Sequence record: MH460460.1
Reading direction: 5' to 3' (one strand)
DNA: 64,000 nucleotides
Part shown: one piece after another, positions 6,992 through 15,161 of the stretch
Layout: each line of letters opens with the position of its first letter
How positions within the stretch are numbered: position 1 is the stretch's first letter
Notes under the pieces: model-generated
Told to the model about the DNA's origin: nothing
What the model saw: the letters and a program-made list of their open reading frames with translations, nothing else
Databases searched by the model: none
Translations under genes and position numbers: made by a program

Positions 6992-8809
6992 ATGTCTACT
7001 ATTTCTTTGTCGCAGAAGAGTCAAGAGATTGCCTCTCTGTCGGCATCTGTTGCGCAAAAGGAAGCTGCAAAGTTTCTTTTTGGCAAAAACTATTTGAAGA
7101 TCCTTGAGACAATCGAGAAACTTGCGAAGTCGAAAGTGGTTGTATCGCCTCAATTGCGTGGTCTGCTTCTGATGATGCGCGATGCAGAAGACGCAGAGAT
7201 CATTAAGTTTCAGAAATCCGTGCCGGGTAAAGCAACCATCAAAGCCGCGCAGGATCTGCTTAAAGCAAAAACTCTGGATGCAAGTTTGAAAGCATTCCGT
7301 GGAATAAAGGTTGCGAAGAAATGGACGCAGGAGGCAGGCAAAACAAAAGACGTGACGAAGCCTGTTCCGAAAGTTAAACCTGCTCGCCAGCCTAAACCTG
7401 CGCCGGAAGAAAAACCTGTTCTGAAAGTTGGTGAACAAGTTAAGTCTGCACCGAAAATTGGAACGCCTCAAATTCCTGATCTCACCAATAAACCAAATCC
7501 GGATACCAAATTCGGCAAACTGGTTAATGACACCGTTCGCGTTATCGTGAATGCTGCATACCTGATCGATGATTCAATGATCATGCTGACCAAAAACGGC
7601 GGCTATCAAATTCGTATCTATCCAAAAGTTACTGACAACCCGCGTGAAGATCTCGCTTATGGGATCATTGTTCATAAAGACGAAACTTTCAGTTACGGTG
7701 TTTATGACAAAAACGGTATCGGTAAAACTGTCGGCAGTGATACCAACATGCGCAAAGCAGTGTCGCGCATTATTCACGAAATCGAAACCAACAACCCGAC
7801 CAATGCTAACGCGTTTCAGGTTGCTTTCGGTAGAGGCAAAGCAAAAGACGATCATAAATCTGAAACCGTTCTGGTTGATGAAATTTCTGATGTGTTGCCG
7901 CAAACTCTGGATAAAAAGTTTGAGAACTATACCGATCACGTTAAAGCGATTGGCGATAACCTCAAACGAAATATTCCCGGCCTGAAAACTAAATTGCTTC
8001 CTCGCGGTCTGGAATTGATCATGGGGCAGGATGAATTCGGCACGCTGAAATTCGGTGATGGGCGTTGGTTACTCACGCCTTATAAACGCGTACACAAGAC
8101 GGTTGATATCGGGCAGAACTATGACGCAGGCTACGTGATTCAAACACTGAAAGATATGTTTGAGGCTGATCGTAAACGTGCTGCGCGTAAAGAAAAAACT
8201 CACGGCGTAACAGATAACCTGATGTTGAAATACAAACAGGATATGATGAGCGCACTGGCAAGTAGCGATCTGAAACTGTTCGACGAAGTTCATAACGGAA
8301 AAGAAACCAACGACGATAATCTTGTTTGGGATATGTCGTATCGTATGCCTGAAACTGGAATCTCGTTGCCTGTTTCTATTCGCTATAATCGCCGTCGTGG
8401 TTACAGCTTTGGATTGAATGGCGCACCTTACACGATGATTCAACCGGGCGTAGCTCAGAACATTGGTAAGTTTGTTCGCGCTCTCAAATCCACTATTGCC
8501 GCTGTTGTGAAAGGTAGCAGTAAAAAATATGCGCTTGTTGATGGGCGTCCGTTTACTCCGGGAACTGGCGTGCTGCACGCGAAAGCGAAAGCGGTTGATA
8601 TTCGCTGCACGCAAACAGCAATTTTCCTTACTGGTAATCCTGCGGCGGTTTCGACTTTGTTCGACGGAAGTTTCAAACAGCCTCTGCTGGATTCTAAAGG
8701 TACGGCAACCGTGAACCGTGCGGCACCGAACAACTATCGCATTCTCTGCAATAATGAGGAAGTGCGTGATCAAATCCTGATGGGTGCAAACATCATCCGG
8801 AAACTGTAA
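6992..8809 (+). CDS. Multidomain hypothetical protein (605 aa) with K/P-rich linker
   Basis: GAGG SD; long ORF with phage-like codon usage. Confidence 0.8.
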   Translation: MSTISLSQKSQEIASLSASVAQKEAAKFLFGKNYLKILETIEKLAKSKVVVSPQLRGLLLMMRDAEDAEIIKFQKSVPGKATIKAAQDLLKAKTLDASLKAFRGIKVAKKWTQEAGKTKDVTKPVPKVKPARQPKPAPEEKPVLKVGEQVKSAPKIGTPQIPDLTNKPNPDTKFGKLVNDTVRVIVNAAYLIDDSMIMLTKNGGYQIRIYPKVTDNPREDLAYGIIVHKDETFSYGVYDKNGIGKTVGSDTNMRKAVSRIIHEIETNNPTNANAFQVAFGRGKAKDDHKSETVLVDEISDVLPQTLDKKFENYTDHVKAIGDNLKRNIPGLKTKLLPRGLELIMGQDEFGTLKFGDGRWLLTPYKRVHKTVDIGQNYDAGYVIQTLKDMFEADRKRAARKEKTHGVTDNLMLKYKQDMMSALASSDLKLFDEVHNGKETNDDNLVWDMSYRMPETGISLPVSIRYNRRRGYSFGLNGAPYTMIQPGVAQNIGKFVRALKSTIAAVVKGSSKKYALVDGRPFTPGTGVLHAKAKAVDIRCTQTAIFLTGNPAAVSTLFDGSFKQPLLDSKGTATVNRAAPNNYRILCNNEEVRDQILMGANIIRKL

Positions 8810-8814
8810 ATATT

Positions 8815-8844
8815 AGGGAGTGGGCGAAAGCTCATTCCCTTTTT
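8815..8844 (+). terminator. Rho-independent terminator (copy 1 of identical 30-mer)
   Basis: GGGAGTGGGC-GAAA-GCTCATTCCC-TTTTT. Confidence 0.8.
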
Positions 8845-8861
8845 CAATTCTGGAGCCAAAA

Positions 8862-9455
8862 ATGTCCTCTGTTTCATGTCTGGTGATTCGCTGTAATCAA
8901 AAACAATTCGAAGCGAAAGAAATCTTTTCGTATCTTCGAATCAAAGCAAAACTTTCTACCGTCTCTGCTGTTATGCTCGCTGTTGAAGACGCAGGACGCT
9001 ATTCGTTTTATATCCTGCGCGATCTGTTTTATTTCCGTAACGTGTCGAAAACGAAAACTGACAAGCCGTTTACTATCAAGTGGACAGAACATCCGGAACC
9101 GGTAACGCAAAACCAATTGCTTGATGGCAACCGCTGGCACCTGACGCAGTTTTTTAATTCCGACCGTGGTTTGGATTCCGGATATATGGTTTCAGAATTG
9201 CAGACCGCAACCAATGTTAGCCTGACGCATTGCCAACGTTTCTTTGTTGATCCGGAAACCACTGTTCCGCGCAATCGCGTTAAGCGTGTTGTTGAGCGCA
9301 ATCCGTTTTTGAAATCTGCTACGGTTGGTGAAATCATTCGCGAAATGAATCGCCGTGGCTATGAAATGACTTACGCACCGAAAGAGAACAGCAATGAAAA
9401 AGATGGGAACGGTAACGGTTCTGTCGTTGAAGGACAAAGCGCCGAAGAACGTTGA
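8862..9455 (+). CDS. Hypothetical protein
   Basis: GGAG SD before ATG 8862. Confidence 0.65.
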   Translation: MSSVSCLVIRCNQKQFEAKEIFSYLRIKAKLSTVSAVMLAVEDAGRYSFYILRDLFYFRNVSKTKTDKPFTIKWTEHPEPVTQNQLLDGNRWHLTQFFNSDRGLDSGYMVSELQTATNVSLTHCQRFFVDPETTVPRNRVKRVVERNPFLKSATVGEIIREMNRRGYEMTYAPKENSNEKDGNGNGSVVEGQSAEER

Positions 9456-10035
9456 TTTGGATATCACTCCAGTTTCTACTGATGACGAGTGGAGCGCGTT
9501 AAGCCCTTTTAAACTCGGCCCTTGTCGAACGGCAGGCGGTACTTTATTTTTCAATTTCGAAAATCTCTGGCAGTACAGTAAAGTTTATCCGGAACATCTG
9601 GAATCAGATAACGATCTTCTTTGCGGAGAAGTTGCTTCGGAATGGTTTCGCTGGCACATGAGCGGCGCACGCGAAAGAAGAGGCATTCGCTATCCTATGG
9701 GGAAAGGAGCAAAAGCAAAATTCTCCGTTTGGGGAAACCTGCGCCTTTCCTATATCTCAGCACGTAAAATGATTTACGTTCCTGAATATTCAAAACTGCT
9801 TTTGGCTAACACGAAGTTCCGAAAACTTTTAAGGCAGTACAATAAAGGCGCTAACATTGTCATTCGTGATTACGATACTTACGATGCTTTGAAAGCGTAT
9901 GCGAATAAAAAAGAACATCATCCGTTTCTTTATGCGTTGAATAATCCTGATAAGAAATTCGGTCATGGTTTCGTTATTGGCATGGCGCTGATGTTGAACC
10001 CTGTTCCCGGATGGTACGATCAATGGGTGCTGTAA
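9394..10035 (+). CDS. NADAR-like (YbiA-related) putative ADP-ribose/N-glycosidase
   Basis: LSPF...FENLWQYSKVY...RYPMG...YISARKMIYVPEY; motif order resembles NADAR LSNF...EHYYQAxKF. Confidence 0.45.
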   Translation: MKKMGTVTVLSLKDKAPKNVDLDITPVSTDDEWSALSPFKLGPCRTAGGTLFFNFENLWQYSKVYPEHLESDNDLLCGEVASEWFRWHMSGARERRGIRYPMGKGAKAKFSVWGNLRLSYISARKMIYVPEYSKLLLANTKFRKLLRQYNKGANIVIRDYDTYDALKAYANKKEHHPFLYALNNPDKKFGHGFVIGMALMLNPVPGWYDQWVL

Positions 10036-10724
10036 TGTATAACGTAAACGAACCTCTAAGCCCAATGTTGAGAGATATAAAAATGCGTTCAATGCCTATG
10101 AAAACTTTATTTATCAGCGTCACCGATTCTCAGTTTGGTACTCATGCCGCTCGTATCTCCAATGAACTGGCTAAAGTTCTTCTTGCTGATCCGGTTGAGT
10201 CCGTTTGTGTTCTGCGCAAAACCAATTCTAATCTGCACGTTTTCGAAATCTATTTCTGCAAATCGGCGGAGATTGATTTCAACGGCGCAGAATACCACGT
10301 TCGTTTTGTTCCGCTCTCGCGCCCGGTAGCAACTTATCCCGGCACCGGAATGTTCGATCCGTCGATTCTGAATAGCGCTATTGAAAACGGTTCGCTGCTG
10401 AACGATCAGCTTTTCACTTCTGAAATGCAACGTGCTTCCAGACAAACGCTCTCGCCTGTTGTGATGAATGCCTCTGTTCGTCACCGCATCGGTGATTACT
10501 CTGCGCATCTGACTGCGAAAGATAACACGATTAAGGCGCTCAACGACGAACTGAATTTACATCGCGCCGTTCTGCGCAAAGACTATTGGATTTGGGAGGA
10601 CGATTTTAAATCTAATGGTTTGGACTCATTGAACTGCCCAATCTTAATTTCTCCGGAACAGTTACGCAGTCTGATTCTCGCTGCAACGCGAAGTTCAGAA
10701 CTTGCTTTGGAGATTAGTGAGTAA
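10035..10724 (+). CDS. Hypothetical protein
   Basis: TAATG coupling; C-terminal YWIWEDD..LDSLNCPILI phage motif. Confidence 0.65.
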   Translation: MYNVNEPLSPMLRDIKMRSMPMKTLFISVTDSQFGTHAARISNELAKVLLADPVESVCVLRKTNSNLHVFEIYFCKSAEIDFNGAEYHVRFVPLSRPVATYPGTGMFDPSILNSAIENGSLLNDQLFTSEMQRASRQTLSPVVMNASVRHRIGDYSAHLTAKDNTIKALNDELNLHRAVLRKDYWIWEDDFKSNGLDSLNCPILISPEQLRSLILAATRSSELALEISE

Positions 10725-11041
10725 TGTTCAGCACAATGATGTTTATTCGTGTCTTCGGATCTAGTTACATGATCAATCCTACTCTGATTGATGCCGGACG
10801 AAAAACTGTCGTAGTAGATCCGAAAGATTTTGTTCCACTGATTCCCGGCTTTGTTGTCGGTGCGCCTTACGCTATTTGCCCGTTGCCTAAAATCTTGAAA
10901 AAGGTTGGGTGTGATTGGCGAGTAAAATCTTTCGAGCGCCTCGAATCGGGCAAATGGCGCTACTTGTTTCATTACCTTAATACGGAATGGACAGTAGAAA
11001 TGATCGTGGGAAAAGATTATGGGAAAGTTATCAAAGGCTGA
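10724..11041 (+). CDS. Hypothetical protein
   Basis: TAATG coupling. Confidence 0.6.
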   Translation: MFSTMMFIRVFGSSYMINPTLIDAGRKTVVVDPKDFVPLIPGFVVGAPYAICPLPKILKKVGCDWRVKSFERLESGKWRYLFHYLNTEWTVEMIVGKDYGKVIKG

Positions 11042-12188
11042 TCAGATTCGTCATGCGCAGGCGATGGATCTAATCAATAGTGATAAACCTCTCACGTTCG
11101 ATCAGAAACTTTTTGTGTATGAAAACTATTTCGAAAGCGCTACCAGTAACGTGCGTGAACTCGGAAGTTTTCATACACCTCTTTCTTACGCGTGGGATTT
11201 TGAATTAGATATTCAAGGATATGGATCGCTCGTTGACCTGTGCGCAGGCACGGGCATTTTGTCGTTCTGCTACAGACACCGCATGAAATACTATCATCCG
11301 GATGAAGTGCCTACGATTGTTTGCGTGGAAATAAATAAAGAATACTGCGACATAGGCAAGAGACTTTTGCCCGAAGCAATTTGGGTAAACGATGATGCGT
11401 TGACTCATGATGTTTTGCAGTATCTTGATCCGTGTACGAAATTTAAGAATGCGATAAGCAATCCACCATTCGGATATTTGAAAACGTCCGAACATATGGG
11501 AAAATATCGCGGGAAAGATTTTGAATTTCGAATCATAGAGCGTGCCTCACAAGTAGCGGAATATGGTTCGTTCATTATCCCACAACAAAGCGCCCCGTTC
11601 ACATATTCTGGAACGAGACACTATCAGGAACGAGATAGCAAAAAATATATCAACTTCCACAAAGATACCGGCATCGAATTAACAGCGGGTATCGGCGTAG
11701 ATAGTTCCGTCTACAAAGATGAATGGAAAAATACTTCGATACTCTGCGAAGATGTACAAGCAGACTTCACGAAGGAGCCAAACAGAATGAAGCAACGATT
11801 GAAATTGATGCACGGCGACACGCTGGAAAAAATCAGAACGATTCCTGATACCAGTGTGGATCTGATCGTGTTCAGTACCGTTAATAAACGTTGGACTGAT
11901 CCGATTCAAATGCAGGAACTCTATGAAGAGTTTATGCGCGTGAAAACTGATAACGGAATCATCATCGTTACAACCGGGCATCGTTTAGATCCTAAAACAT
12001 ATCATGCGCTGATCAAAAAGCACTGTCCTAAAAATGGAGTGGTGTTAGATCCTTATATGCTGCGCGGATACACCGGATACATTTGCGCGAAACTCCAACT
12101 CAAGTATATAGGCATCGAGCAAGATCCTCTCTTTTACTCGGTTTGTAAAAGTTACATTGTTGATGCGTATAAAAAGTTCAGTCAATAA
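11019..12188 (+). CDS. DNA amino-methyltransferase (motif I then NPPF) fused to a degenerate beta-class MTase module
   Basis: DLCAGTGILS, VCVEIN, ISNPPFG; C-terminal LMHGDTLEKIRTIPDTSVDLIV...VVLDPY...YIGIEQD lacking DPPY. Confidence 0.85.
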   Translation: MGKLSKADQIRHAQAMDLINSDKPLTFDQKLFVYENYFESATSNVRELGSFHTPLSYAWDFELDIQGYGSLVDLCAGTGILSFCYRHRMKYYHPDEVPTIVCVEINKEYCDIGKRLLPEAIWVNDDALTHDVLQYLDPCTKFKNAISNPPFGYLKTSEHMGKYRGKDFEFRIIERASQVAEYGSFIIPQQSAPFTYSGTRHYQERDSKKYINFHKDTGIELTAGIGVDSSVYKDEWKNTSILCEDVQADFTKEPNRMKQRLKLMHGDTLEKIRTIPDTSVDLIVFSTVNKRWTDPIQMQELYEEFMRVKTDNGIIIVTTGHRLDPKTYHALIKKHCPKNGVVLDPYMLRGYTGYICAKLQLKYIGIEQDPLFYSVCKSYIVDAYKKFSQ

Positions 12189-12201
12189 TTAGAGGAAACG
12201 T

Positions 12202-12390
12202 ATGAGGAAAACTCCAGTAGCCGTTTGCGTAAACTCTGCGTTGATGCGCGGTGCAACTATAGCTGCCTATTCAGAAGAATATAACTGGCATTACGTTCCA
12301 ATCTCTGACGAAGAATTTTTGCGTCGCGTAGTAGCAAACGGCAAGTCTGCATTAATAAAGGATCGACAATGGGAAAGCTCAAAGTTTTAG
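12202..12390 (+). CDS. Small hypothetical protein
   Basis: GAGG SD; fills gap between the MTases. Confidence 0.5.
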   Translation: MRKTPVAVCVNSALMRGATIAAYSEEYNWHYVPISDEEFLRRVVANGKSALIKDRQWESSKF

Positions 12391-13592
12391 TTGGCGACTG
12401 CAAAAGGAGTTTGAAAAAGATTCCTGACGCCAGTGTTCAAATGTGCGTAACAAGTCCTCCTTATTACGGTCTGCGTGATTACGGAAACCCTGCGCAGATC
12501 GGATTGGAGGAAACGCCGGAACAGTACATTGAATCTTTGGTAGAAGTTTTTCGTGAAGTGAAGCGCACGCTTAAAGATGATGGCGTGTTGTGGTTGAACA
12601 TCGGCGATAGCTACTACAATCCTTCGAAAAAGAAACACAAAAATCTTAAAGGAAAAGATTTGATCGGCATTCCGTGGATGCTCGCTTTCGCATTACGTGA
12701 GGACGGTTGGTATTTACGGCAAGATATCATCTGGCAGAAAACATCGCCTATGCCTGAAAGCGTTCGTGACCGCTGCACCGGAAGCCACGAATACATGTTT
12801 CTTCTCGCTAAGTCTCCGAAATATTATTTCGATAACGAGGCGATCAAAACTCCTGTTAAGCAGGATTGGGGAACACGTAATCGCAAGGATGGGAAGTATC
12901 ACAACGAAGGAACCGGATTGCAGCCACATTCCGGATTAGAAAAAAGTTATTCCAAAGCGAACAAGCGAAGTGTTTGGACGCTCGCGCCTCAGCCGTTCAA
13001 AGGCGCACACTTTGCAGTCTATCCACCGGATTTAATTCTGCCTTGTATTCTCGCAGGATCGAGAAAAGGCGATACCGTTTTAGATCCGTTTGGCGGTTCC
13101 GGAACAACGGCGGCAGTAGCGAAATATTTAAATCGCAATGCAATCCTTTGTGAGTTGAATCCTGAATACGCAAAAATAATGCCGCAGCGTGTCGAGAGTG
13201 TTCTCGCAAACTATGCTGCAAAGAAAAAATCCCCACTTACTTTATTACGCGAACCTAAAAACTTGCGAAAAGTTAAGAAGGGAAGTGCTGATCTGATAGT
13301 TGTTGAAAAATTCGATCTGCCTATCTCTGAAATCTCACGAATCAAATCTGACAATGGTTCTGCTTTTGTCTTGGATAGAAAACTTTCGGTGAAAGAACTT
13401 ACTGAACTTATTCTGTCGAACACAACGGAAGGCCAAACAGTTTTCTCACCAAACATCCGGAAAGGAAGAATCGGTGTTGTGTGCGCTAAACTGAATCGTC
13501 GTCTGATAGGAATCGGTCATAAACATTATGACGAGGCCAAAGAGAAGATCGTTAAGAGCTATCGCAAGCACTATAAAGAACAATCCGCGTAA
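12369..13592 (+). CDS. Beta-class DNA methyltransferase (m4C/m6A) with second degenerate MTase module
   Basis: GDC...SVQMCVTSPPYY, HEYMFLL, HFAVYP, VLDPFGGSGTT, ILCELN. Confidence 0.92.
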   Translation: MGKLKVLVGDCKRSLKKIPDASVQMCVTSPPYYGLRDYGNPAQIGLEETPEQYIESLVEVFREVKRTLKDDGVLWLNIGDSYYNPSKKKHKNLKGKDLIGIPWMLAFALREDGWYLRQDIIWQKTSPMPESVRDRCTGSHEYMFLLAKSPKYYFDNEAIKTPVKQDWGTRNRKDGKYHNEGTGLQPHSGLEKSYSKANKRSVWTLAPQPFKGAHFAVYPPDLILPCILAGSRKGDTVLDPFGGSGTTAAVAKYLNRNAILCELNPEYAKIMPQRVESVLANYAAKKKSPLTLLREPKNLRKVKKGSADLIVVEKFDLPISEISRIKSDNGSAFVLDRKLSVKELTELILSNTTEGQTVFSPNIRKGRIGVVCAKLNRRLIGIGHKHYDEAKEKIVKSYRKHYKEQSA

Positions 13593-13649
13593 GTCTCCCG
13601 GCGGGGAAATGGAATGCCCCGCAAAACTCCCTTCTCTTTGTCCTTTGAA

Positions 13650-13706
13650 GTCTACAAATCGCTGTCCAAAATACCGCTCGAAACTCCCCTATTTTCTTGA
13701 TATCCT
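13650..13706 (+). promoter_or_regulatory. Class-E promoter
   Basis: GTCTACAAA-N4-TGTCCAAAAT; TATCCT 38 nt after TGTCC start. Confidence 0.7.
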
Positions 13707-13768
13707 AAACCCTCTAGGGCGCATTGCGTCCACATACTGTCAATAACCCAAATAAAGGATTCATCTAT

Positions 13769-14104
13769 ATGTCTACTATCTCTGACGTGAAAGGTATTGT
13801 TGCTTGTGTACTGGCTAACCCGGTTACGCTTCCTCTTACTGTTGCGTTTGGTAGCGCTCACGTCGATCCGGAATACCAACTCGAAATAACCGAGCGCGAT
13901 ATGCAGGATGTAACGCCGCTCGATCTGGAAGAACAGACAGTGCTTCTTAATGCACGCATCGACGCTAATAAAAACGTGCGTTACATTTTAATCGGCGAGT
14001 GGAATGCGCTCGAATCTTTCATGAAAGAAAATTTCCGCGTCGGTAGTTATCATTCGTACATGCAGAAACTTGAAGCCGAAGATAAATACCGCAACAAGAT
14101 TTAA
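13769..14104 (+). CDS. Hypothetical protein
   Basis: AAGGA SD; first gene after class-E promoter. Confidence 0.65.
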   Translation: MSTISDVKGIVACVLANPVTLPLTVAFGSAHVDPEYQLEITERDMQDVTPLDLEEQTVLLNARIDANKNVRYILIGEWNALESFMKENFRVGSYHSYMQKLEAEDKYRNKI

Positions 14105-14166
14105 ATAAAAGCTCATGCGCTCAAACAAGGGCGCATTTCTCTCAAAATCGTTTAAGGATAAATTTT

Positions 14167-14646
14167 ATGTACACGTTAAATCAAATCGTTCAGAAGATCA
14201 TTAACCACGTTCCGGACGTGGCAGAAATCAGTCACATCGAATTCATTCATAAAAGCGGTTGTGATTATGTTTACTTCCAACTGCACGGCATTACTTATCG
14301 TGTTGATGCTGGCTTGTCTGTTGAAGAGAAAGACGGTTCGTTTTTAGTTTCTTCTCAGGCCGCACGAAATATTCAGGCTGTTCTCCGTGGCGAACGTAAA
14401 ACGCTTATCAATACAGAAGCGCGTAACAAAGCGGTTGACGATATCGTTAACAACGCATCGCACATTGAATTGCAGGAAGTTCTGATCGGTATTGGCGAGC
14501 CGGAAGAAGGTTCGTTAGAAGAGTTGCAGAAAGCGGTGCGTGATTGGCTGCACGGCGATAGCAAAATGCTGATCGAGAAAATGGAAATCATCTGGCTGTT
14601 CTTCGGTCATGATAAAGCAACTGCATTCAATGAGGCGTTTCGCTAA
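14167..14646 (+). CDS. Hypothetical protein
   Basis: AAGGA SD. Confidence 0.65.
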   Translation: MYTLNQIVQKIINHVPDVAEISHIEFIHKSGCDYVYFQLHGITYRVDAGLSVEEKDGSFLVSSQAARNIQAVLRGERKTLINTEARNKAVDDIVNNASHIELQEVLIGIGEPEEGSLEELQKAVRDWLHGDSKMLIEKMEIIWLFFGHDKATAFNEAFR

Positions 14647-15161
14647 TGGACATTCAAACGATTTTGAAATACACGCCGGAACAGTACAAAGAAAAAGTAA
14701 CTGTTGCCCTCAACAACTACGCGCCGATTGTTGAACAATTTCAGGAAGAGATTTTCACGCGACTTAGAGAAGTGTCAAACAAGCCATACATCACGGCAGC
14801 AAGTGAATATCTCTTTCCGGTGAAAAACATTTCTATTTATATGCGCTACGGCGCTGGTCGTGCTGGTCGCTACGGTCATGATACATTGTGCATTGCGAAC
14901 ATCGAAGTTCCAAAACGTCTGGAACACAAAGGCTTCTTTACTGCGCTGATCTTTTCTCTGATTGCAGAATGCCAGCAACGCAAAATCATTCTTATGGTGG
15001 AGAATCCGCTGGAAAGATTCTTTCAGGATTTTCTTTTGCGTATTGGTTTTATCTGTCCGAACCGAAATGGTTTAGGGATCGGCACTTTCCATCGTCCGAT
15101 TGACGAAGGCCAGATTAGCCTTTACCCGTTCTACAATATGGATAAAGAACATGCAGAATAA
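14646..15161 (+). CDS. GNAT-family acetyltransferase-like protein
   Basis: LCIANIEVPKRLEHKGFFTALI (motif A variant) ... FLLRIGF (motif B). Confidence 0.6.
   Translation: MDIQTILKYTPEQYKEKVTVALNNYAPIVEQFQEEIFTRLREVSNKPYITAASEYLFPVKNISIYMRYGAGRAGRYGHDTLCIANIEVPKRLEHKGFFTALIFSLIAECQQRKIILMVENPLERFFQDFLLRIGFICPNRNGLGIGTFHRPIDEGQISLYPFYNMDKEHAE

Follow-up and report, generated by a model that had tools for sequence, protein, structure and literature searches.

Why should two neighbouring phage methyltransferases of different classes both end in a methyltransferase-like module without a catalytic motif? The question is raised by Dickeya phage vB_DsoM_JA13 (MH460460.1), a 254-kb jumbo myovirus of the genus Salmondvirus, of which a stretch of 64,000 nucleotides (nt), hereafter the window, was analysed. 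Two genes on its + strand are concerned. JA13_234, here called M1 (11019-12188; 389 amino acids, aa), consists of a gamma-like methyltransferase core followed by a C-terminal tail, tail 1 (aa 257-389, 11787-12185); the gene is supported by its open reading frame (ORF), by the annotation and by a phrog_3820 match. JA13_236, here called M2 (12369-13592; 407 aa), consists of a beta-class methyltransferase core followed by tail 2 (aa 285-407, 13221-13589). Each tail is a shrunken beta-class amino-methyltransferase core, made of a five-stranded alpha/beta sheet with five helices, from which the (D/S)PPY motif, some 110 residues of the central part and the cofactor-pocket glycine loop have been lost.

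The two tails are paralogues. When the last 132 residues of M1 are compared by BLASTP with the last 123 of M2, 36 out of 115 aligned positions are identical (31%, E-value 9e-13); the relationship proposed by the original prediction is thus confirmed, and the sequence strings it quoted are present in the two proteins. Tails of the two types also match each other in every relative examined, with E-values from 3e-4 to 2e-14. Both match the C-terminal part of the PF01555 profile, tail 1 with 35.4 bits and tail 2 with 18.2 bits, the Pfam cut-off being 26.7. The match of tail 1 is confined to profile positions 170-216; the first residues of this tail also match the N-terminal part of beta-class profiles (phrog_67).

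What the tails have lost was established by comparison with 60 canonical beta-class enzymes, chosen as the closest to the tails. Motif IV, D-P-P-Y, conserved at 97-100% in the canonical set, is absent: tail 1 features FSTVN in its place (11871-11885), while in tail 2 the motif is deleted, leaving a gap. From motif IV to motif I, between the same two alignment columns, both tails are also devoid of a block of median length 110 canonical residues, which in solved beta-class enzymes corresponds to the DNA-recognition loops and the dimer joint. In the cofactor loop, the canonical G-S-G (98, 97 and 100%) is replaced by L-R-G in tail 1 and by R-K-G in tail 2, the former motif I now reading DPYMLRGYTG (12048-12077) and SPNIRKGRIG (13446-13475), respectively. 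The Asp preceding the loop (98% in canonical enzymes) and the Glu of IGIE (100%) are kept in tail 1; in tail 2 they are Ser and Gly. In the tails of two remote M1 relatives, P0157 and P0158, the cofactor loop contains no glycine. It had been claimed that enzymes of different classes share a beta-class-like C-terminal module without catalytic motif or target-recognition region, and this description is borne out.

The same picture is obtained by alignment to CcrM of Caulobacter crescentus (PDB 6PBD): positions 6-29 and 69-124 of the tail profile align to chain residues 16-39 and 205-260, while positions 30-68 stand opposite residues 40-204 (chain numbering, which runs 8 ahead of the native one, Tyr34 of DPPY being taken as reference). 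The AlphaFold2 model of tail 1, with a predicted local distance difference test score (pLDDT) of 93 and a predicted template modelling score (pTM) of 0.88, shows five strands alternating with five helices, that is, the alpha/beta fold of class I methyltransferases in beta-class order. The 38 highest-ranking PDB matches all belong to beta-class enzymes, most of them with a template modelling score (TM-score, here and below normalised to the tail) of 0.6-0.8; the best superpositions are with CcrM (0.82) and with TTHA0409 and M.BceJIV (both 0.79). The tail takes the same secondary structure in the model of full-length M1 (pLDDT 89.5, pTM 0.73), built on an alignment with only nine tail-bearing rows and no beta-class enzymes; canonical beta-class rows, added to deepen this alignment, were misaligned onto the core, and the version containing them was dropped. 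The tail 1 model also superposes on an independent model, from BFVD, of the M2 protein of phage JA11, over 131 contiguous columns (TM-score 0.81, root-mean-square deviation 2.1 Å, 30% identity); we take the superposed stretch to be the JA11 M2 tail, the tool reporting no target range.

The cores to which the tails are attached carry the motifs originally assigned to them. In M1 (core aa 1-256, 11019-11786, as marked by invariant columns and by its nearest relatives and folds) motif I, DLCAGTG (aa 73-79, 11235-11255), stands ahead of NPPF (aa 148-151, 11460-11471). Both are invariant in 66 homologues, and their order, with a variable region after the catalytic domain, is that of the gamma class. 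Residues 1-257 are matched by phrog_3820, 'DNA methyltransferase', with an E-value of 3.5e-91. The nearest solved folds, searched from the AlphaFold2 model, are Type I HsdM, M.TaqI and CamA (E-values about 1e-6), with RNA methyltransferases ranking close behind. No PDB sequence match falls within the M1 core, and no curated family reaches its cut-off there (the top Pfam family, MTS, scores 18 bits for a cut-off of 23); because of the latter, DNA adenine is indicated only as the likely substrate of M1.

The M2 core (aa 1-284, 12369-13220) is a complete beta-class enzyme: an intact SPPY (aa 29-32, 12453-12464) is followed by an intact DPFGGSGT (aa 239-246, 13083-13106), and PF01555 is matched with 195 bits, above the cut-off. 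Its matches include TTHA0409 (E-value 6e-21) and CcrM (1e-16), of which it is not an orthologue, scoring 113 bits for a cut-off of 830. The labels attached to M2 are in conflict: GenBank reports a 'putative DNA adenine methylase', while a UniProt homologue is described as cytosine-N4-specific. Since SPPY is commoner in N4-cytosine than in N6-adenine enzymes, the adenine label is uncertain. M2 homologues also feature insertions of up to 35 residues after GDSYYN (alignment columns 85-120; aa 84-95 of the window M2), and in the M2 of one related locus, L006, about 20 residues are deleted further on (columns 198-229; about aa 160-195). Because both sites fall in regions which, in CcrM, are DNA-recognition loops, M2 relatives may differ in target specificity.

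Close relatives of either core exist without a tail. Over its whole length, the M1 core shares 50% identity with the tail-less ORF030c of phage RB43 (YP_239006.1, 244 aa), and about 280 similar genes from T4-like phages also stop at the core end. Of the 94 M1 homologues with an E-value <= 1e-5, a further 85 are tail-less or have short unrelated extensions (238-476 aa, most below 300). The M2 core is 65% identical to the tail-less methyltransferase of Serratia phage Smarc2 (QPB10042.1, 297 aa) and about 60% identical to cyanophage enzymes, likewise without a tail. The tails are additions to enzymes which are otherwise ordinary.

The additions are rare. A search for the same architecture in other phages had been suggested, and it returned the module from this phage clade only. 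When a profile of the two tails was run against 1.84 billion representative proteins, three matches scored below 1e-30, namely the families of M1 and M2 and one M2-homologue fragment; beyond them, scores drop sharply to ordinary beta-class enzymes, matched in two pieces. Complete tails in the phage collection are found in JA phages only, and in BFVD the compact module is matched by JA proteins alone, the other significant matches being longer methyltransferase proteins, most of them aligned over about 200-300 columns. A literature search returned no description of the tailed architecture.

Two candidates for a tail encoded on its own were rejected. The sequence P0006 is a fragment of an M2 homologue, starting inside the core, and a 137-aa ORF following the tail-less M1 relative P0160 (locus L020) is unrelated to the tails (hhalign probability 0.2%). 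Free-standing beta-class-like proteins of 130-162 aa, without central region and DPPY, do occur in other phage contigs: P0118, present on four contigs (L017:4001-4489, also L018 and L019), directly follows a DNA polymerase III alpha gene, and P0092 is found at L016:384-776. They may represent independent cases of a similarly truncated module. A different arrangement is seen in P0007, a metagenomic protein of 1282 aa, composed of about 20 tandem repeats of 59 residues, each matching only tail residues 21-46, the motif IV strand region.

Modules stripped of catalytic and cofactor motifs could be functionless leftovers, still decaying, of fused methyltransferases which were once complete. The loss of both motifs is what such a history would leave, and divergence is indeed two to four times faster in the tails than in the cores. 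Their rate is, nonetheless, far slower than neutral: the ratio of nonsynonymous to synonymous substitution (dN/dS) is 0.08-0.27, well below 1, wherever synonymous divergence is measurable (dS unsaturated), and in saturated comparisons the proportions of nonsynonymous and synonymous differences are 0.21-0.33 and 0.75-0.94, respectively. No stop codon or frameshift is present in any of the 13 aligned tails. The degenerate loop residues themselves are invariant within each close family (DPYMLRG..G in M1; S-P and then K-G-R-I-G in M2), and the fold is predicted with high confidence. Both tails are thus under purifying selection, and decay without function is very improbable.

The state of the cofactor loop bears on a second possibility, this one raised by the original prediction, that the tails bind S-adenosylmethionine (SAM), or mimic a methyltransferase, and so sequester cofactor or divert host restriction or defence proteins. 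Tail 1 does keep three acidic positions whose conservation in canonical enzymes is 93-100% (in GD, the D of DPY, the E of IGIE), two of which would touch the cofactor, by analogy with Asp88 and Asp301 of the rotifer enzyme N4CMT (PMC10406627). All three are lost in tail 2, and the first two residues of G-S-G have been replaced, by Leu and Arg in tail 1 and by Arg and Lys in tail 2; the glycine-free loops of P0157 and P0158 point the same way. Fusion to an active enzyme, moreover, is not something a decoy would require. None of the findings favours the anti-restriction variant, and a decoy role of either kind is regarded as scarcely credible.

The central proposal of the original prediction was that contact between the two tails brings M1 and M2 together in a single complex, able to lay two different marks at once. 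Several features of the locus fit this proposal. The two genes are adjacent and co-directional, forming a tightly packed block with JA13_235, a 62-aa ORF lying between them on the same strand (12202-12390), which overlaps the start of M2 by 22 nt; the ORFs of the block thus overlap or nearly abut. The pair persists in six related lineages (JA29, L003, L006, L007, L013, L015), the tails are paralogues, and dimers are the usual form of beta-class enzymes (PMC6787082, PMC10406627).

Natural variants argue against an obligatory pairing. L014, an 8.8-kb scaffold, encodes a tailed M2 which belongs to a cluster of 13 member sequences and whose tail is 81% identical to that of the window. The order of genes is syntenic (a DUF6939 gene, ORFs of 237, 105 and 62 aa, M2, a downstream ORF) and M1 is missing: comparison of L014:3289-3850 with window positions 10724-12400 shows presence or absence of the whole M1 gene, the homologue of the 105-aa ORF being directly followed by that of the 62-aa ORF. 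Conversely, L010 and L011 (11 kb examined of contigs of 21 and 36 kb, respectively) contain a tailed M1 among different neighbours and no M2, and in L012, too, a tailed M1 is found with no M2 in the DNA examined.

The charge of the tails is likewise unfavourable to canonical pairing. Both are basic, with isoelectric points of 9.2 (tail 1) and 10.1 (tail 2), and net charges in relatives of +1 to +9 and +9 to +14, respectively. The contacts by which known enzymes of this class dimerise are, in addition, located in the segment the tails have lost. The CcrM dimer is held by Asp113-His134 pairs and by Phe130, inserted in an aromatic cage (PMC6787082), and none of the three residues has a counterpart in either tail. 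In N4CMT, the tenon (Phe206) and most residues of the cage (191-264; PMC10406627) seem to lie in this missing stretch as well, under a numbering offset assumed for the crystallised construct. As the canonical beta-class joint is absent, any contact between tails would be of a new kind. The single-enzyme loci, the shared charge and the missing joint together weaken the idea of a dual-mark heterodimer, which is now considered rather improbable.

How two unrelated enzymes came to share the module may be read from the relationships among the tails. Outside its own family, the best full-length matches of tail 2 are tails of M1 type, P0155 scoring 48.6 bits in a single stretch across the deletion junction; canonical enzymes reach at most 34 bits, and the core of M2 itself 2 bits. 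Since both tails carry the deletion at the same junction and tail 2 is closest to M1 tails, the module must have arisen only once. Tail 1 scores 62 bits against canonical enzymes, in two pieces, and about the same, 62 bits, against P0156, the most distant clear M1 tail; being equally near to both, it is the less derived copy. Tailed M1 proteins are also more widespread, comprising a close clade (P0001-P0004, P0154, P0155) and P0156, which is 49% identical overall and 34% in the tail; P0157 and P0158 are less well supported members, the tail profile matching their tails at hhalign probabilities of 76% and 55%. We infer that M1 was the first to carry the module, and that its neighbour M2 acquired a copy later, in the Salmondvirus-like clade.

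A possible trace of the first step is preserved at the core/tail junction of M1, where a Shine-Dalgarno-like AAGGAG (11772-11777) is followed, after a 9-nt spacer, by the in-frame ATG of Met257 (11787-11789). The GD-motif Gly is residue 10 when counted from Met257, and residue 6-14 in 45 of 56 canonical beta-class enzymes; at this matching distance, Met257 is where a free-standing beta-class gene would be expected to start. A boundary Met and an upstream Shine-Dalgarno-like element are present in 10 out of 10 tailed M1 genes, while the peptides linking core and tail are wholly different between deep lineages (TKEPNR, VPEIER, FEGERE, QRELDY). Pairing of the junction element to the anti-Shine-Dalgarno sequence is predicted at -4.3 to -8.6 kcal/mol, which equals or surpasses the -2.9 to -6.4 of eight gene starts of the window, and in each tailed M1 gene only 0.5-7% of codon positions rank as high by pairing energy. 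All this is most simply read as the fusion, through loss of a stop codon, of a gene of the gamma class with a beta-class gene downstream of it, the old ribosome-binding site and start codon of the latter persisting at the junction; the fused beta half would then have decayed into a structural domain, a copy of which would later have been joined to the neighbouring, unrelated beta-class M2.

Because the site survives while synonymous positions between the lineages are saturated, it may still be under selection, for instance by yielding a free tail protein; the purine-rich codons of the linker are a possible confounding factor. The conserved start leads to another explanation, by which the tails are self-association modules, pairing like with like, possibly together with a free tail 1, and setting the oligomeric state of each enzyme separately. 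It would explain why each tail is retained without the other enzyme, and why Shine-Dalgarno element and ATG are kept in all ten M1 junctions in spite of unrelated linkers. In the tail model, loss of the edge hairpin should, furthermore, expose the strand at aa 52-61 as a sheet edge. At the M2 junction, in contrast, no conserved internal start was found, and purine-rich codons for Glu, Gly and Lys in the linkers could mimic a Shine-Dalgarno site. Self-association is therefore retained as an unlikely, though not negligible, explanation. A more elaborate version is held to be improbable: the internal start of M1 would be in use, giving a free pseudo-methyltransferase of about 15 kDa, and free and fused tails would assemble through a new, non-canonical interface, regulating or linking both methyltransferases. 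If so, the free tail would be a phage counterpart of the pseudoenzyme regulation known for METTL3-METTL14 or DNMT3A-DNMT3L.

The explanation we tentatively favour is that each tail is a non-catalytic helper domain of its own enzyme, rather than a device for the obligate coupling of M1 and M2. Tails are retained whether or not the other enzyme is nearby, and each is connected by a short linker to the C-terminus of an enzyme core. They probably bind DNA, as their charge and the analogy with CcrM suggest, and would help their own enzymes to engage it, through backbone contacts or by positioning. The Arg and Lys residues filling the former cofactor loop would sit on the face which, in active enzymes, meets DNA.

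Some considerations weigh against this explanation. DNA binding by the tails is argued from charge and from analogy. The pTM of full-length M1 is only 0.73, too low to fix the placement of the tail relative to the core, and the model of tail 1 alone comes from an alignment dominated by beta-class enzymes, and is biased towards their fold. The contigs with a single partner span 3-36 kb, as compared to a genome of about 254 kb, and the missing partner could lie elsewhere. Finally, the conserved internal start of M1 hints at a possible free tail 1 subunit, which would fit a role in assembly better than one exerted purely in cis. A use of the shared tail as a tag for import into the phage nucleus was also considered; it was set aside, not refuted.

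The region of the two genes matches the JA13 record with 100% identity and is 95-98.5% identical, at the DNA level, to those of JA11, JA33 and JA29, and no DNA match beyond the JA phages was found among 50,697 phage records compared; JA phages have been placed, with Y3, AD1 and Yoloswag, among the 'hairy' myoviruses (PMC6143709). Homologues of JA13_235, at 39-77% identity, are present in L002, L006, L007, L013 and L014, and family profile searches with it matched no family. The hypothesis that it is a third, degenerate copy of the module, limited to the motif I half, was rejected, BLASTP and family searches being empty; the RefSeq label 'putative methyltransferase' of its JA29 homologue is without support. 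A gene of the DUF6939 family (9394-10035, + strand) precedes M1 by three genes and occupies a syntenic position in all close relatives (71-83% identity). A scan of positions 8500-14800 for promoters and terminators was uninformative: promoter-like sites are fewer than expected from shuffled sequences, and terminator-like sites are within about 1.5 standard deviations.

The locus offers a clean example of the evolution of a viral pseudoenzyme, whose steps are legible in natural variants: fusion to an upstream neighbour; loss, in block, of catalysis, cofactor pocket and recognition loops; persistence as a small domain under selection; copying onto a second methyltransferase. The truncated module also represents a minimal stable piece of the beta-class core. 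Methyltransferases are a main counter-measure of phages to host restriction, and an accessory domain altering their contact with DNA would be relevant to the protection of the large genomes of jumbo phages.

Several known systems resemble the tailed enzymes in part. The RB43 ORF030c-type and Smarc2 enzymes are similar to the M1 and M2 cores over their full length, and differ in ending where the core ends. A division of labour between an acting and a non-acting methyltransferase fold is found in EcoP15I, whose Type III Mod dimer unites two beta-class subunits, only one of them methylating and the other reading DNA (PMC4490356); the Mod subunits, however, are full-length, identical and potentially active, while the tails are truncated and permanently dead.

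Catalytically inactive partners of methyltransferases include DNMT3L, Trm6 and the second module of PRMT7. METTL14, an inactive paralogue supporting METTL3 (PMC5023411), is comparable to the tails: in such systems a paralogue dead for catalysis is retained because it scaffolds the active enzyme or helps it to bind nucleic acid. Most such partners are separate chains with a full fold, pairing through the normal methyltransferase interface. The JA13 tails, in contrast, are fused in cis, have lost about 110 core residues together with the dimer joint, and are found on two enzyme classes.

CcrM is the precedent for the favoured explanation. A linker of 10 residues joins its beta-class core to a basic C-terminal domain which contacts the non-target DNA strand and on which activity depends (PMC6787082). 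Like M2, it has a beta-class domain (about 260 aa in CcrM) followed by a short linker and by a basic, non-catalytic C-terminal domain (about 90-120 aa); the protein is also the best structural match of tail 1. The folds of the two C-terminal domains are different. That of CcrM is SAND-like, with six antiparallel strands (PMC6787082), while the tail 1 model, with its five strands and five helices, finds its matches on methyltransferase domains: the tails are truncated, Rossmann-like methyltransferase cores, placed where CcrM carries a SAND-like domain.

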